From Podarcis bocagei (Eukaryota): a stretch of DNA of 64,000 nt. The notes under the pieces are model-generated. The model was not told the origin of the DNA. It saw nothing but the letters and a program-made list of their open reading frames with translations, and made no database searches. Of the stretch, positions 1,702 through 36,650 are shown in pieces. A program made the position numbers and the translations under genes. How positions within the stretch are numbered: the first letter of the stretch is position 1; each line of letters begins with the position of its first letter. The DNA lies in the NCBI GenBank assembly GCA_964188305.1, contig OZ076890.1, one strand, 5' to 3'.

Positions 1702-4489
1702 TCAGTTATACACATTACTTACTGTAATTTGTGATTGCCGTGAGAGAGGAGTGGCTGTTGGTGTAATAGTGATGCTGCTGGTGATTTTGTTGATAGCTTT
1801 AGTTGGCGTTCCATTGGCTAACGCTGGACTTCTGCTATCCTGCGCTGTGGTGCAAGGGCTAATGTTTTTTGCTGAATTAGGAATAGCTTGAACATAAGGG
1901 CTTCCTAAGTGAATATGTATTTTATTATCTTCAGTAGTTATCACACTAGAACCAGAACTGTTAGATCTTTGAAACTGCCAGGATGACTGCCTTTCAGGAG
2001 ATACTCTAAAGATAGCATGCTTGTCACCAGTTTCCAGAGGCTCTGGTGAAAGTACCTGCTCCGGGGAACTTGAAGAACTTGTAAGAGCCAGAGGGGACAT
2101 TGTCCTGTCAGGAGTTACTGAGCCACATGATTCAGGTGTTTGAGATCTAGCAAAGGCAGACACAGTAAGTGGTGGCACGGCTTGCTCTGGACTTGTATAA
2201 CCATCAGCTACTTTAGATTTTATAGGCGTCAAAGACCCATTTTTAATTATGGTTATTCTTTGCTTTGGTGTGCCACAGTTGGGTATCACAGCTGTGCTTG
2301 TAAAAGAGTGGGAACTCTCTGTAGTAGGGCTTGTTATTTCAAGGGTAGCTGTGTTTTGTCCATGGTCAGGAGTAACTTTTATATGAAGAGGCTGGCCTGG
2401 TGTATGGCTTAGAACCAAATTTCCAGGCTGAATGCAGTTTCCATTCTGCTTGGTGAGAACTTTTCCATTTTGGATGTGGCTTTCTTTGGACTTCATCCAC
2501 GGTATCCAAAGTTTACTATTGTTTACTGCATTTGCAACAGCGGCATTGTACTTGAAGGATATTGTTTGCTCATCATCATTGTTGTCGTCGTCTTCTTCAT
2601 TGTCACTCTCTTCATATAAATGTCCATTTATGACAGCCCGTTCCAAAGGAACTAGACTCTTGTAATCAGGTGGTTCATTGTCTGCTGGTTCTGTTTGAAC
2701 TTCCTTAGAGAGAACTTGCAAGTCGGAAATTCTCCTTCCATTGAGACTTGGTCTGAGGCTCTTACTGAAACGCCGATACCTCTCTAGTTCTTTAGTAAGG
2801 ATTTCCATTTCTCTTCCCAATTCTTTGTTTTTGTTTTCCTGGTGAGTGAGTTTCTTCTGCAGGATTGTATGGTCTTCCCTTAGATGACATATTAAATCTT
2901 CTGTAGCCATGTACTCATGAATTTTCTCCTTCAGTGCATCTACTTCCCTTGAAAGGTGTCCTGATTTGGCTGCTTCTTCCTTGAGTTTCCTGAATAATCT
3001 CTGTTCGTGGTTGCATTCCGTCTTTTCTGCTAACTTATACCGAGCCAATTCTCTTTTCACAACATCAAGTTCCTCTGATAGGAATCTGGCTTTGTCTTGT
3101 TCATTGATATATCTACGTTCTAAAGATTCAAATTCATCCTCTGTTTTCATGAGATCATCTTCTATGGCTTTCATTTCTTTAAGTTTGTGCTTGAGCCTCT
3201 CAATTTCCTGGGCTAGTTCTTTAATCTTGTTGTTTTCTTGCTGCAAAGATGGGCTAGGCTTGGTAGTTTCCTTAAGTTTATTTTTAAGAAACTCCTTTTC
3301 AATGGCTTCTAAGGACTGAAGCTTTTTCCTTAGCAGGTTCATTTTGGAGGAGAGATCACTTCCTTTCTCTTCCTCTGCTTTTAGTTTGTTTTTCAACTCA
3401 TCCCTGTCTCTTGTGAGATGAGACATTTTTTCCTCTGCATCAGTTTTAGATTTTAATGCCTTCTTGCTTTCTTCAATCAGTTTTTCGGTGACTGACATAA
3501 CTTTTTTTTGTTCCAGCTGAAGTTGTGTATTTGCAGTTTGTAGTTTTTCTTCTGTTTGTTTTATTTTCTCATTCATTGTTTTCCTCTCGTCTACAAGCAT
3601 GACCGTTAATGATTTCAGTTTTGTCAAATCTTCCTTAAGTGTGAGCTCTGTTTTTTCCAATTTGCTTTCAATTATTTCAAGCTCTCCTATACGGGCTTTT
3701 AAGCCATCCAGTTCCTGTGACAGCTGCTTTGTTAACATTTTTTCTTTTTCAAGGTTGCATTTCAAAGAGTAACATTCCTGCTTGCTCTTGCTGAAAGCAT
3801 CCTCCAGTTTCTCAAGCTCCATTATTCTCTTGTTGAGTTTATCAACTTCTGCTTTGAAGTTCTTACTCTGGGATGCTTCTTTTTCTAGCTTCTTGTGAAG
3901 CTCCCTGCACTGTTCTTCCATTTTTATGAGTTCTTCGTCCTTCCCTTCCATCTCCAGTACTCTTTTCCTTAGTTCTTCCACTTCAGACATAAGGGTAGAA
4001 TTTCCACATTCCCCTCTGTTCATTTTCTCTCTCAGGTCCTGCAGTTCTTCTTCCGCCTTCCGCAATGACTTATTAGTCTCCTCAAGTTCATCAATTTGCC
4101 GACTGAGGGCTGTTAATTTTAAGCGAAGCTGGCGGTTCTGGCTCTCTTCATTGGTTAGTTTGGCCATGGCGACCTCCTGTTCTTGGCAGGCCTTACAGGA
4201 CTGCGCCTGAAGTTCTGCTTCCAGCCGGAGAGCTTTCTGTTCCTCTTCTTGAGCTTTTGTTTCTGCAGTGGAGAGTTTCTCATGAGCTTGTTCCGCAGTG
4301 ATGGTCAAGTCTTGGATCTTTTGGCTTTGCTGGCTTAGCTGTTCTGTGAGTCTTTGCTGTTCATCCACGACCATTAACGCAAATGTTTTGAGTTTTGTCA
4401 GTTCCTCCTTCAGTTTGTTTATTTTCTTGCTGTTTTCCTTTTCTTTTTTTGCCTGATAGGCTGCGTCTTGGTCAATAAGCTTTTTCAAT
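1702..4489 (-). CDS. FILIP1L: FILIP1L large terminal coding exon (2788 nt; long coiled coil plus Ser/Thr/Pro-rich C-terminus ending QITVSNVYN*)
   Basis: 936-aa ORF. Acceptor ttgcctttcAG|A TTG AAA completes the phase-2 Arg codon. FILIP1L motifs [49 protein letters not shown]. The spliced CDS is 3408 nt and in frame. Confidence 0.97.
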
Positions 4490-5418
4490 CTGAAAGGCAA
4501 AAAAATAATCAAAATTAATTTTGTGATAGTGTTTCCGATACGTACTTAAGAAATGAAGTGCTGTTTTAGAAAATATGAAATCCTTTCTTTTAGAAAACAT
4601 TTGAACAGATAAAATAATATTTCTTGAACAGATATTATACATTTCCCACAGTTGTAATTTTAACTTGTTCAAAGGTATCCACTTCCATACCTCCTTCTCC
4701 TCTTCCTTTGGTGTGGATGCTAATGTGGACTATATATTGCCCTAGGCTAGGAAGGAGGTAGAAGGTAGATTGCACCTTGTAATTTCATGTTATCTTCTGC
4801 CTTGTAATTAACATTTTATGGGCATATTTGTGGTTCTGGCACACTAGATCTAAAACTCACTGCCATGCATCTTTTCATGTTAGCAAAAGGCCAATATCTT
4901 GCCCTGTATATAGACATTTCATGACCCAATATACTTTTTAATAGCATGTTACCTGCCTGTGTCATATTTTAAAAGTCCTATTATGGCTATGCACAGCTAC
5001 ATTAAAAATACACAAATGTTAATTGTACGCAACTCTACTTTTTGGAGAGCTTTAGTATTTTCGTGTTGGAAGCTTTATCTTGATTTTCTTTTTTTCCGTA
5101 GCAGTAAATAAAAATTCGATCCCCCACTCCCATTAATTGCCTAAGGCAATATGTTCAGATACATAAAACACCCCTTAAGGTGGTAATAACTATAATTAGC
5201 TTAGTAATAGACAATTTTATGTGGGGTAGAACATTTTTCAGTGCTTTCTGGTTTTGCGGAGAATATTCCATTTCATAAGTTCATTAGTGAAAATGAATGG
5301 TTACCAATTAAAAATACATTATTAGGCAAGCTTGGCAGTTTCAAAGTTCTTAGCTCTGCTTACTAAACTCAAGTAAAGTAAACATTCTAAATTAGATACC
5401 CTTTAGAACATCGGAATA

Positions 5419-12429: not shown

Positions 12430-12605
12430 GAATAGCTGCCTTATTCTGAGTGAGACCTAGCTGAGTCTTGCCTGCACGTGACTACCAGTGGCTCTCCAGG
12501 GTTTCAGACAGGAGGCATTCCCAACCCAACCTGGAGACATCGGGGATTGAACCTGGGAGTTTCTGCATACAAGGCAGATGCTGTACCACTGAATTATGTC
12601 TCCCC
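12430..12605 (-). mobile_element. Old tRNA-derived SINE, same family
   Basis: Minus strand has A box CAGTGGTACAGC and B box GGTTCAATCCC, followed by the shared body. Confidence 0.7.
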
Positions 12606-14060: not shown

Positions 14061-14273
14061 TAGCTCTGTTGGTAGAGCATGAGACTCTTAATCTCAGGGT
14101 CATGGGTTTGAGCCCCACGTTGGGCAAAAAGATTCCTGCAATGCAAAGGATTGGGCTAGCGAGGGATGATGGGAGTTGTAGTCCAAAAACAGCTGGAGGC
14201 CCAAGGTTGGGGAACACTGGGCTAGAGGACACTCATGGCTTTCTTCCAACTCTATGATTCCAACTCTGTGATT
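14061..14273 (+). mobile_element. tRNA-Lys(CTT)-headed SINE with CR1-like tail, interrupted by half of a hAT MITE (14161-14219)
   Basis: TAGCTC.GTTGGTAGAGCATGAGACTCTTAATCTCAGGGTC.TGGGTT.GAGCCCCACGTTGGGC matches tRNA-Lys-CTT; tail TTCCAACTCTATGATTC. Confidence 0.8.
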
Positions 14274-22785: not shown

Positions 22786-23555
22786 TTTACCAGATTAGAT
22801 TACTTGTTTATTTAGTTGAGTACAGTATTGTCTACTCGGGTATGGGGGACCTTTGTCTCTTCTGAGCCACAACTCCCACCATCCCCAGCACACATGGACA
22901 GTGGCCAGTGTTGATGGGAATTGTAGTTCAGCAACATCTAGAGGACCAAAGGTTCCCCACACCTGTGCTACCTGCAAGCCTCTGGAGATAGGCAACAGGT
23001 ATTTCCCATTTGCTTCCTTTAACTAGAGATGTAAGTGGTTGAACCTAATACCTTGTGCATCCAAAGCATGTGCTCTATCACTGAGCTGGGGTCACTGTAT
23101 GCAATTATGCAAAATTAAAAATATCCCTTTGTGTAGGGGTGGATAGAGGACACATCTGCTAGGACTCTGGGTGATTTGTAGGGCTTCTTACTCCCAGTTG
23201 ATCAACAACTAGGTTCCTGAAATGGAGAAAGCCTGAGAGAAAACCAGGAGTGTGTTTGTGTGTGCTCTGCTCTTGAAAGTAAAATTGTCAGGCTGAGCAT
23301 GTATTCAATTCATAATTTTAAGTGTGTCCTTGCTTATTTATTTAAAAGATTTATTGCTTGCACTTCACCATAATGTTCCAGAACACGTTGCAACAATGCA
23401 AAATACAATTTAAAAAAGAGGGTGGTATTCAAATAAGTTTAAGTAGACCTACTGGAATTTATGGCCATAACACAGTCATTAATTTAAGTGGGTCTACTCT
23501 GTGTAAAACTTAGTTGAATATGACACAGATCAAATCATTAGTGTTATAAAACAAG

Positions 23556-23578
23556 TATATATATATATATATATATAT
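23556..23578. repeat. (TA)n microsatellite, left flank of the PLE-like element
   Basis: Pure TA run. Confidence 0.95.
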
Positions 23579-23630
23579 GCAGGTTTTGGTGTCTTCGGGT
23601 GTCTTCCCGTGTAAGAGTTGGGGTGTCTAG

Positions 23631-23668
23631 GCGACGTTTCGACGAGGTCTCACTCGTCATCTTCAGGC
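23631..23668 (-). ncRNA. Minimal type-I hammerhead ribozyme motif (inverted copy 3)
   Basis: Reverse complement of the same motif (gcgacgtttcgacgaggtctcactcgtcatcttcaggc); lies in the FILIP1L sense direction. Confidence 0.75.
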
Positions 23669-23902
23669 TGGTGCTTTCGGCTTCTTGTTACTAGAACAGA
23701 GCAGGATCTCAGTGTTTGAGTTCCTATAAATACTGTTGAGGGGGTGTGGTGTATAGCCTCAAACGTTATGGGCAGAGAGGAAGTTCCCAGGTTAGTGTGC
23801 CTTTTCTTCTTTTGTTCATTAATTACTTGAGGGATATCTTGTTTGAGGAACTCAAACACTGAGATCCTGCTCTGTTCCAGTAACAAGAAGCCGAAAGCAC
23901 CA

Positions 23903-23940
23903 GCCTGAAGATGACGAGTGAGACCTCGTCGAAACGTCGC
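23903..23940 (+). ncRNA. Minimal type-I hammerhead ribozyme motif (copy 1)
   Basis: GC-CTGAAGA-T-GACGAG(tgagac)CTCGTC-GAAA-CG-TC-GC: CUGANGA and GAAA core, 6-bp stem II, palindromic ACGU stem III, GUC cleavage triplet ending at 23938. Confidence 0.75.
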
Positions 23941-24419
23941 CTAGACACCCCAACTCTTACACGGGAAGACACCCGAAGACACCAAAACCTGCATTCCTGT
24001 ACCCGTGAAAATCTACGAAAGCAAATATATATGCAATCCCTACACAGATCTGGCTGGCACAGGGCACAAAACCACAGCTCGCCCCTATACACGAAGCCAA
24101 GCCAGAGCACAACTAAGTGCAGTACAGCCATCTTCTCAGAAAAACTCTTCACAAGCTCAAGAGGTCAAGACACGAAAGCTTTAGCAACTAATCCACACCT
24201 AATGACCCTCCTAAGTGGTACTCAGAATATCACTCAAGAAATCACTCAAGATATCCCTCAAGTAATTAATGAACAAAAGAAGAAAAGGCACACTAACCTG
24301 GGAACTTCCTCTCTGCCCAGAACGTTGGAGGCTATACACCACACCCCCTCAACAGTATTTATAGGAACTCAAACACTGAGATCCTGCTCTGTTCCAGTAA
24401 CAAGAAGCCGAAAGCACCA

Positions 24420-24457
24420 GCCTGAAGATGACGAGTGAGACCTCGTCGAAACGTCGC
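24420..24457 (+). ncRNA. Minimal type-I hammerhead ribozyme motif (copy 2)
   Basis: Identical to copy 1; core starts at 24422, predicted cleavage after 24455. Confidence 0.75.
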
Positions 24458-24507
24458 CTAGACACCCCAACTATTACACGGGAAGACACCCGAAGACACC
24501 AAAACCT

Positions 24508-24511
<4 letters not shown>

Positions 24512-24552
<41 letters not shown>
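24512..24552. repeat. (TA)n microsatellite, right flank of the PLE-like element
   Basis: Pure TA run. Confidence 0.95.
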
Positions 24553-24555
<3 letters not shown>

Positions 24556-24884
24556 TAAAAGGAATATAACAGTATAAATTCAACAAGAGGGCTGAATTCC
24601 ACAAAACAAAACACGCTGAACTGTCAAAGATCAGGGTGAACCACAGCATCATGTTATAAAATAAAAGTAGATACTACAAACCTGAAGCACCTCTGATGAT
24701 ATTATGACCAATTCCGCTTTTCTAAGACACTTCTTCGCATAGTCTGCCAGGATTAGCTACACTCTGAGTAGACCCATTGACTTCAGTGTGGTTAAGCCTA
24801 TTGATTTTAGTGGATCTTGGCTACCACCCTATGTATGCTTGCATAGAAACCAATTTAGCATTGTAAAGAGACAATTCTTTACAA

Positions 24885-34543: not shown

Positions 34544-36650
34544 ATGTAAGTGTTTTGCAGTATACTTATAGGAATATTTACTTTAGAGTAAGTCCCAGTC
34601 TGTTCAGGTTACAGTGCAGTCTGGAGAGTTTATCATTTGTTCATTAGTACTGTATGTGGCAAGTCATTGCTAGCCTGGAGATGATAGGTTAGATTGCATC
34701 AGGACTGATGTAGCGCTTTCAGTAGACTGGAAGGGAGAAGGTGTAGGCAGCTCTGACTCCCTATATTATAACTTTGTAAAAACAGTTGCCAACTTTCCAA
34801 CAAGTCTTCTGTGTCCCATACATTTACCCTTTAACAGCAGTTTGATCTGCAGACATTACCAGGCAATCGTGTTCCTTGCCAGGTCTTGAAAATATTTGCT
34901 TGTCTGCTGTTAAATGCACCAGCACATGGGTCGTCCCCCGCCCCCCGATCAGCTGGCAACCCTAGTTATAAATAGGGTGAATGCATTGTTTGCCATGTGG
35001 TCTTTCTAAAGTCACAGTTTACAAAGGAACACTCTTTCCTGCATGCCATATTGAAATTAATCAGGTTTATATGTTGGGAGCACATTGCAGATCATAATAT
35101 TTAAGTATTCAGATACAATTCACGCCCATTTCAGTTAAAATTTGTTGCCTTTAACTTTATGAGACTTAAATGAGATGTGACTGACTAGTTGTCCAACTGA
35201 TCTCAATTAACTTTAAGTGCTCTTATTCTGGATTGGGACTTCTAATTATATTGCACTTACTTCAACTTTTCAACCAAATCATTGTTTTTCAGGGATTACC
35301 TGATGAAATCCTCCATAGGGATTATTTCTGAAACACGATTGAAACCAAGCTGACAATGATTGCAATCCAGTAGGTTCCTTTAGTTGTGCTGGGACATTGC
35401 ACATATGTAGTGGGGCTTTTGCAAGTAGTCTAGCATGTGTATCTCAAAGGTTATATGCAGTGCAATTTGGAAAACCTGTTGTGGGCTGTTCAAGATAGAT
35501 ATATCTGGAAAATGCCACAATATGTCTCCCAAACTGTATGGGACTATAGGAACTTCTCCTGAAGCTATTAGTGATATATTAGCCCTAGGAAAACTTCTTA
35601 AGGTCTAGTGAGCAAAGTTACGTCTCTTTCACTAGCAGATCATCGTTTGAGGTCCCAAGCCCCTGACACTGAAAGGCAACTATTTTTAACTCCTGAGTAT
35701 TACTTAAGTCTTGGTATACTTGTGGTGTTCAGCTCATGACTTTGGAACTCTTAGGCCTGCCAGCCCTGTGACCTCAGTCATACCATTGCCTGTAAATAAT
35801 CTTGTATGTTAATTTTCATTCTGAATGATGCTCTATGTATGGTCTTTCACCACTGCTTGTGTGTTTATGTGGGAAGTGCCTTTCATGTTTTCTGAGGCTG
35901 TCTGTTTGGAAAAATTGTACAGCCTCATTTGATCCTGAATGAACAAGTGCTCTATGAAAGGATGGGTAACTGGACATGGGACTGTAGTAAAGGGTTTTTA
36001 AAGAAAATAATTTTGAATCATCAGTGCTGATGGTGGGATTAAGAGACTTGCAGAAGAATCTTCCGTCTAGAAACTGGATGGGTTTATTTAAGGTGGCTTA
36101 AAAAACCCCACACACAACACTTACAGTTTACCACTGCAGTTCATTTCTGACGTTATATTTTCTGGATTATGAGTCATGGATGTCATTATAGTTAAACATC
36201 CATGTGCAGAATGAATGCACTTCAGAGGGACAGAAGTTAAAGAAAAACAGAAGTGTGAATAACTGCTAATGGCATGCTTCATGGCTCCATTCAGTCTGCC
36301 ATTTCATTTCATCATACATAAGGGGGATAGTTGAGAGATACCTTTCTTGACATTTAAATGGCAACACATGTTTGCAATGGTGAATGGAAACTATAGTTGA
36401 AAAAAGACGGGCATATGGCATTGAGAAGGCAAGGAGAAATTTGTTGCCCTAATATGCACCATGTAATTGGTACACTTAACTTGCTGAAGTGGCTGTTTTA
36501 TTTTATTTTTTAAAAAAACTGTTCTCCATTTGTGTAAGTTTTCCCAGTCCGTATGTGTTTAGTGCCTTCAGGACTTTTGTGCACAGAAATCAGGCTAGCC
36601 TCATGTTGTTCCAAGGGGAAGTTGACAGACAGGAGTGTGTAATAGGAGCA

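Follow-up and report, generated by a model that had tools for sequence, protein, structure and literature searches.

A 931-bp insertion (positions 23579-24509) sits within a (TA)n microsatellite that continues on both sides of it, in the stretch of DNA analysed here (the window, i.e., 64,000 nucleotides of Podarcis bocagei contig OZ076890.1, assembly GCA_964188305.1). We consider it roughly 80% probable that this block is a compound insertion scar composed of three 5'-truncated, 3'-terminal fragments of an autonomous Penelope/Poseidon-type Penelope-like element (PLE) in a lacertid (TA)n tract. The original prediction had read the same letters as a retrozyme-like element with a 517-nt monomer; this apparent monomer presents itself instead as the 478-nt fragment A joined to the tail of a shorter fragment B. 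The features on which our reading is built are given below, where "unit" denotes the apparent 517-nt repeat, L001 a contig with the 5' part of an autonomous PLE and L002 a PLE locus of Podarcis muralis.

23556-23578, no strand: left portion of the target (TA)n microsatellite (repeat analysis and sequence reading)
23579-23841, minus strand: fragment C, an inverted, 5'-truncated PLE 3' end (98.5% identical to unit 255-517 and 95.3% to L002; tblastn match to aa 694-758)
23633-23666, minus strand: minimal hammerhead of fragment C (exact motif match)
23842-23846, no strand: head-to-head junction of C and B with a few filler letters
23847-23992, plus strand: fragment B, a 5'-truncated PLE 3' end with part of the pLTR, a hammerhead and nt 1-82 of the ORF, which reach RT start site 1
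23905-23938, plus strand: minimal hammerhead of fragment B, predicted cut after 23938; the ATG of the PLE ORF lies at 23911, at the start of stem II
23911-24438, plus strand: fortuitous 175-aa patchwork ORF that opens at one hammerhead's ATG and closes at the TGA in the following hammerhead's loop II
23993-24028, plus strand: "tail" belonging to fragment B, covering ORF nt 83-118 of the PLE as far as RT start site 2 (L001 201-236, the L002 minus copy, loose ends of reads, PMC11167929 and PMC8557442)
24029-24031, no strand: TA-like letters separating B from A, either filler or what remains of the microsatellite (sequence and comparison with L002)
24032-24509, plus strand: fragment A, a 478-nt, 5'-truncated PLE 3' end (95.6-95.8% identical to L002, blastn 95.4%; tblastn matches in two frames)
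24422-24455, plus strand: minimal hammerhead of fragment A, predicted cut after 24455
24510-24553, no strand: GC, then the right portion of the target (TA)n (sequence reading)

Each fragment carries one exact copy of a 34-nt hammerhead motif, for which zero occurrences are expected from 100 shuffles. The claim of three identical motifs, two of them on the plus strand 517 nt apart and one on the minus strand, was correct: repeat analysis places the two plus-strand copies in a direct repeat of 99% identity with 517-nt spacing (23846-23992 = 24363-24509), and the third lies in an inverted arm in which 23579-23841 is the reverse complement of 24247-24509 at 98.5%. Fragment C, whose 3' end adjoins the left (TA)n, carries the last ~65 ORF codons, and fragment A carries ORF aa 624-758 with a frameshift near 24154; in both, the hammerhead comes next and a further 54 nt lead to RT start site 1. 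At the frameshift, most public reads have a single A inserted behind 24152 compared with fragment A. The filler at 23842-23846 mirrors the first letters of fragment B (a small snap-back), while the TA-like run at the joint of B and A spans 24025-24031, with a filler of 3-8 nt whose exact limits are ambiguous. Every fragment stops at one of two internal sites, 54 nt and ~90 nt downstream of where the hammerhead would cut, and these RT start sites are located 82 nt and ~113-118 nt into the ORF, i.e., ~31-40 nt apart. The hallmarks described for PLE insertions by Craig et al. (PMC8557442), namely 5' truncation, partial tandem copies, an inverted copy next to the element and a tail of 30-40 bp, are all seen in this block, as is a (TA)n/AT-rich target. 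Since the three fragments together show ~5 substitutions among 683 nt, the insertion looks young, though not brand-new, in line with the original view of a young, PLE-derived and non-autonomous sequence. A variant at 24473 is common to B and C and absent from A.

The element from which these fragments derive can be followed at other loci. L002 contains a head-to-head PLE pair, each arm of which shares 95-96% identity with fragment A. This locus provides an autonomous RT+GIY-YIG partner of the kind for which the original prediction had proposed a search: upstream of the fragment-A equivalent, the locus continues as an unbroken 758-aa open reading frame with no stop codon, matching RVT_1 (E 4e-16) and, below the Pfam cut-off, GIY-YIG (E 1e-3). 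Nothing resembling 23993-24031 is present in L002 upstream of the position equivalent to 24032. Its minus copy ends with a 31-nt tail and then (TA)n, and its plus copy ends at the equivalent of 24509, again followed by (TA)n. The locus as a whole (L002:2384-7055, P. muralis OZ076968.1) consists of head-to-head ~2.3-kb, 5'-truncated PLE copies in one (TA)n tract with the tail on one arm only, and an annotated gene model, P0003, spans 10 kb there but is not recovered when the retrieved locus is translated.

The 5' part of the autonomous element was reached via the protein P0002 and is found on L001, where positions 29-236 align at ~82% to unit 346-517 and then 1-36, with 44 nt around the hammerhead identical. 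The window's 23993-24028 matches L001 201-236 at 92% and continues the PLE N-terminal coding sequence (ORF nt 83-118) past the end equivalent to 24509. The RT part of L001 led in turn, through a P. muralis protein of 85% identity, to L002. Very probably, the parent is a Penelope/Poseidon-type element of ~3 kb whose single RT+GIY-YIG ORF begins within its own hammerhead and terminates within the following one. On a metagenome contig (L005), a full-length PLE has hammerheads at 109-158 and 3020-3069 with a U3-A8 core variant and the AUG at the same position, and it ends in (TA)n ~90 nt into the next ORF. The L001 RT protein is 85% identical to P0003 (P. muralis) and 83% to P0004 (Vipera latastei), with the next matches at <=59%; such closeness between lizard and snake RTs is unusual and may reflect horizontal transfer. 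The Vipera hammerheads differ through compensatory changes.

Where other copies of the family end was read from sequencing data placed on 23400-24700, comprising raw RNA reads from two runs, a DNA contig set and a further contig set whose kind is uncertain, mostly labelled as other species. Summed word depth in the DNA set is 0.3-1.5 million on the element as opposed to ~60 in the unique flanks; the PLE family is very abundant, though this depth figure is not a copy number. In every run, loose ends consisting of (TA)n appear directly behind 23994 and behind 24032, and these positions are two alternative 3' ends, ~31-40 nt apart, as in the signature of a PLE "tail", which Frangieh et al. (PMC11167929) attribute to a pair of neighbouring internal RT start sites. 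The letters found in loose ends before 24032 agree with those of L002 upstream of the fragment (34-35 reads in each RNA run, 9 DNA contigs), and broken reads at this position number 54 and 99, compared with a mean depth of ~43 and ~62 in that bin. Most reads therefore appear to break at 24032 instead of crossing the joint; Logan contigs of a high-copy repeat are too short for counting bridging copies. In L002 and in the reads alike, PLE ORF sequence lies to the left of 24032 and (TA)n to the right of the tail, which speaks against a 517-nt retrozyme unit.

RNA depth is 10-60 on the element in both orientations, with none in the unique flanks, and ~81% of the placed reads continue into unlike sequence, so that they must stem from other copies in other contexts. 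Both raw RNA runs contain T>C differences at 23926, 23942, 23957, 23958, 24335 and 24443 (11-32 of 27-51 reads), which occur only in reads with the first mate on the plus strand and are almost absent in the other orientation. These clusters could be due to A-to-I editing of antisense PLE RNA in inverted-repeat duplexes or to a transcribed subfamily. Another high-copy, expressed repeat with variants of its own lies at 23444-23531, directly to the left of the (TA)n tract (DNA word depth 12,000-43,000, RNA depth 5-56).

A mechanism for such a scar can be modelled on PAc, a Poseidon-type PLE of Anolis carolinensis, in which both DNA strands are cleaved and extended at AT-rich targets, the ORF starts at stem II and two adjacent internal RT start sites are found at ORF nt 111-118 (Frangieh et al. 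2024, PMC11167929). By analogy with this biochemistry, the GIY-YIG nuclease of the lacertid element would have cut both strands of AT-rich DNA, and each DNA end would have primed cDNA synthesis at the internal site of the element's RNA, giving the head-to-head pair of C and B. Fragment A could then have arisen by a template switch to the start site of a further RNA during the same event or by a second insertion into leftover (TA)n. Either one event or two may have taken place, with a filler of 3-8 nt that is perhaps partly template-derived. The variant at 24473 shared by B and C would mildly favour separate templates.

The likeness to PAc extends to copy 3' ends at two internal sites in an AC-rich ORF region with a 30-40-nt tail between them, as well as to AT-rich targets and the use of both DNA strands that explains head-to-head copies. 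In both elements, the AUG lies where stem II begins and the cut ~26-27 nt downstream of it. The lacertid start sites differ from the PAc main site in position (ORF nt 82 and ~113-118 versus 111-118), the lacertid protein is only ~45% identical to that of PAc, and the window copy consists of truncated fragments instead of a full element. Unlike the Anolis carolinensis locus included in our comparison (L003), whose ORF stops ~120 nt before the next hammerhead, the lacertid ORF runs into that hammerhead and leaves no 3' UTR.

Because the hammerheads are located just upstream of the start site, they would be passengers of each fragment, and because the fragments end 54 or ~90 nt downstream of the cut, it was not the ribozyme that set the ends of the RNA being copied. 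In A and B, the cDNA ran across hammerhead sites that were intact. Most likely, the 517-nt spacing is simply the sum of 478 nt, filler and tail and hence an insertion accident, not a unit selected for RNA processing. The fragments lack RT/EN domains as well as ORF nt 119-172, which are needed in the PAc template (PMC11167929), and were therefore most likely dead on arrival and immobile, bearing in mind that these template requirements stem from a PLE with a protein only ~45% identical. For a transcript of the whole block, whichever strand it comes from, complete pairing of the outer hammerhead within a ~263-bp duplex is predicted. The host gene appears to be FILIP1L on the minus strand, with a 936-aa open frame containing a CortBP2 domain (1702-4512, minus strand) that fits its large coding exon, so that a host transcript would carry only one hammerhead, buried in a hairpin.

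Among the alternatives, we regard as unlikely that the block was formerly a partial tandem of an inverted copy, a pLTR and a full-length PLE which later lost ~1.8-2.4 kb of its ORF by an internal genomic deletion. Such an order of inverted, partial and longer copies is the canonical PLE layout (PMC8557442), and both sides of the joint are collinear with the PLE. However, a random breakpoint is not expected to fall exactly at the tail end, i.e., RT start site 2, and it is this coincidence that makes the deletion less likely. In addition, A differs from B and C at 24473, and the TA-like letters at the joint suit target DNA better than a deletion scar.

Quite improbable, too, is a genuine family of non-autonomous, retrozyme-like elements. 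Here a 517-nt unit, derived from the PLE by deletion but retaining its hammerhead and RT start site, would give multimeric transcripts that paired hammerheads cut into circularising monomers, and the autonomous PLE would mobilise them in trans. Retrozymes of the non-LTR type in animals (Cervera & de la Peña 2020, PMC7229834; Li, Clavereau & Pollet 2026, bioRxiv 10.64898/2026.07.22.740005) are reported to stem from PLE pLTRs and to be present in reptiles (bioRxiv 10.64898/2026.07.22.740005), and like them the block combines same-strand type-I hammerheads in direct repeats, here 517 nt apart, with PLE-derived sequence devoid of RT coding capacity. The unit would moreover keep RT start site 1 and the tail, the PLE family is expressed, and the cDNA of A and B passed two hammerhead sites uncut, as a multimer or circle would allow. 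However, non-LTR retrozymes are tandem arrays of one short hammerhead unit that many copies of a family share, whereas a mere 1.28 "units" are present here, without a fixed-unit array, and what looks like a unit arises where two truncated PLE fragments meet. On its left, the supposed deletion breaks exactly at the RT start site or tail end, where other copies meet (TA)n, and the joint itself contains TA-like filler. Most reads appear to break at 24032, and the data examined show no sign of an amplified joint. Furthermore, the unit would be devoid of ORF nt 119-172, the template segment required by PAc (PMC11167929).

The RNA data point the same way in that RNA ends do not pile up at 23938/23939 or 24455/24456 in either run, the only listed site consisting of five ends at 24458. 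Neither circular nor cleaved RNA was seen, though ordinary RNA-seq under another species label could miss circles. PAc is similar in that no RNA-seq reads end at its hammerhead cut site (PMC11167929). The burial of the outer hammerhead predicted above also disfavours a processed unit. No protein spanning the 24028/24032 joint was found in libraries of 1.8 and 5.8 billion sequences, an observation of little weight because these libraries consist of called genes and short contigs in which a non-coding repeat is seldom called. By evidence of this kind, an amplified 517-nt family is excluded only indirectly.

Still further down in probability, and a long shot in our view, the block could represent a retrozyme caught at birth, with truncation and re-initiation at an internal site having made, in one step, a 517-nt unit between same-strand hammerheads with the RT start site retained. 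If this were true, a transcript from 23847 or downstream could be cut by the hammerhead pair, circularised and copied in trans by the autonomous PLE, and the block would show the origin of animal retrozymes from PLEs.

A compound scar of PLE fragments would also account for the coding content of the block. The original prediction had seen no RT or GIY-YIG sequence, and neither an RT nor a GIY-YIG/EN domain was found in the window by Pfam search or comparison with the PLE. PLE coding sequence as such is nevertheless present: fragment A encodes the last ~135 codons of the PLE ORF, and each plus-strand hammerhead carries its first 27-39 codons. In the 175-aa ORF, aa 1-39 are the PLE N-terminus, aa 42-83 are read out of frame and aa 84-175 are the PLE C-terminus, to which these last 92 residues are 93% identical; a 1-nt deletion in fragment A, near 24152-24157, puts the middle of the ORF out of the PLE frame. 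A stop-free run of this length occurs in 0.3% of shuffles. We nevertheless rejected this ORF as a gene, since it belongs to no Pfam family and is explained by two PLE coding pieces plus an out-of-frame A/C-rich stretch. A HMMER search with it found two relatives, P0002 (PLE N-terminus, aa 1-39, 69%) and P0001. The latter is a P. muralis protein annotated as "Translin associated factor X" (TSNAX; UniRef A0A670HLY4_PODMU) in which the last 96 residues are PLE C-terminus (95-97% identical to ORF aa 80-175), and this PLE-derived end reflects either exonisation of a PLE fragment or an artefact of the gene model.

As RNA, the hammerhead motif reads GC / CUGAAGA / U / GACGAG-UGAGAC-CUCGUC / GAAA / CG / UC / GC. 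It consists of CUGAAGA, an unpaired U, a 6-bp stem II (GACGAG/CUCGUC), GAAA, a palindromic ACGU without loop III and the GUC triplet, with a stem I of only 2 bp (GC/GC), just as it had been parsed originally. PLE minimal hammerheads have been described as having CUGANGA/GAAA cores, a long helix II, a short helix I and palindromic positions 15.2-16.2 without loop III (Cervera & de la Peña 2014, PMC4209133). In all three window copies, we found their conserved core (C3-U4-G5-A6-N7-G8-A9, G12-A13-A14, then A15.1 and U16.1-H17) together with the unpaired nucleotide between A9 and 10.1. Further likenesses to these metazoan ribozymes are the G10.1-C11.1 pair, the location in a pLTR, and the combination of long helix II, short helix I and palindromic 15.2-16.2 without loop III that implies dimeric action, as helix III can form only between two copies. 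With 2 bp, helix I of the window motif resembles the D. virilis variant and is shorter than the 4-5 bp of Schistosoma families (PMC4209133).

To compare the motif across PLEs, we used hammerheads from loci obtained through protein searches: L001 (the autonomous PLE contig), L002 (P. muralis), L003 (Anolis carolinensis), L004 (Vipera latastei) and L005 (the metagenomic contig). The 34-nt core is identical in the three window copies, L001 and L002 amid flanks that are ~82% identical. For covariation, six sequences were aligned (window, L001, Anolis, two Vipera and one metagenomic). Under canonical pairing, 93% of cells are paired, with 8 of 10 pairs changed on both sides, and neither shuffles nor slid registers come near its score in this alignment. 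Helix II is 97% paired across the six hammerheads and occurs in four different sequences, and four of its six pairs change on both sides. The original assignment to minimal type-I PLE hammerheads is thereby supported, and the PAc-like layout also points to it. In helix I, pairs one and two form in all six sequences and show double changes; the third forms in three of them. C3-G8 becomes U3-A8 in L005. The G-C pair at 10.1-11.1, the unpaired U and the palindromic ACGU at 15.2-16.2 are invariant in all six, none of which has a helix III or loop 3, and an AUG is formed in every one by A9, the unpaired U and G10.1. Judged from sequence comparison, the motif is a real member of the PLE minimal hammerhead class.

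The check with Infernal-type models envisaged originally did not succeed, as no Rfam hammerhead family matched at the gathering threshold in the whole window or at E<=10 in 23500-24600, and only tRNA-like matches and TA-repeat noise came up; this fits a motif without stem III. Two tRNA-model matches elsewhere in the window, 12532-12603 (minus strand, 43.6 bits) and 14061-14118 (plus strand, 34.7 bits, partial), are probably heads of tRNA-derived SINEs and not tRNA genes. A match to a generic hammerhead pattern at 35300-35345 was discarded because it has no stem II and the count of such matches is within chance expectation. ViennaRNA folding of monomer and dimer recovered only stem II and predicted a dimer without the ACGU/ACGU helix. 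Thermodynamic folding is uninformative for a protein-assisted minimal ribozyme; the PAc hammerhead cleaves in vitro only with its own protein present (PMC11167929).

That the motifs are chance look-alikes without ribozyme ancestry, as the missing Rfam match, the 2-bp stem I and the recovery of stem II alone by folding might suggest, is hardly credible given a core identical in three copies, L001 and L002 across ~82% flanks, covariation of stems I and II and C3-G8 among Anolis, Vipera and metagenomic PLEs, and a position and AUG layout that match the experimentally cleaving PAc hammerhead (PMC11167929).

The block belongs with Penelope/Poseidon-type PLEs and their minimal hammerheads and is as such ordinary and already known, since PLE minimal hammerheads, tails, inverted and partial-tandem scars and (TA)n targeting have all been published. 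It does counsel caution, because a same-strand hammerhead pair at regular-looking spacing is insufficient for calling a retrozyme, and before any hammerhead period is interpreted, it needs comparing with the autonomous element and with other copies. For the biology of the family, the pile-up of lacertid copy ends at two internal sites ~31-40 nt apart, downstream of the hammerhead, adds small but independent genomic support to the in vitro result from Anolis.
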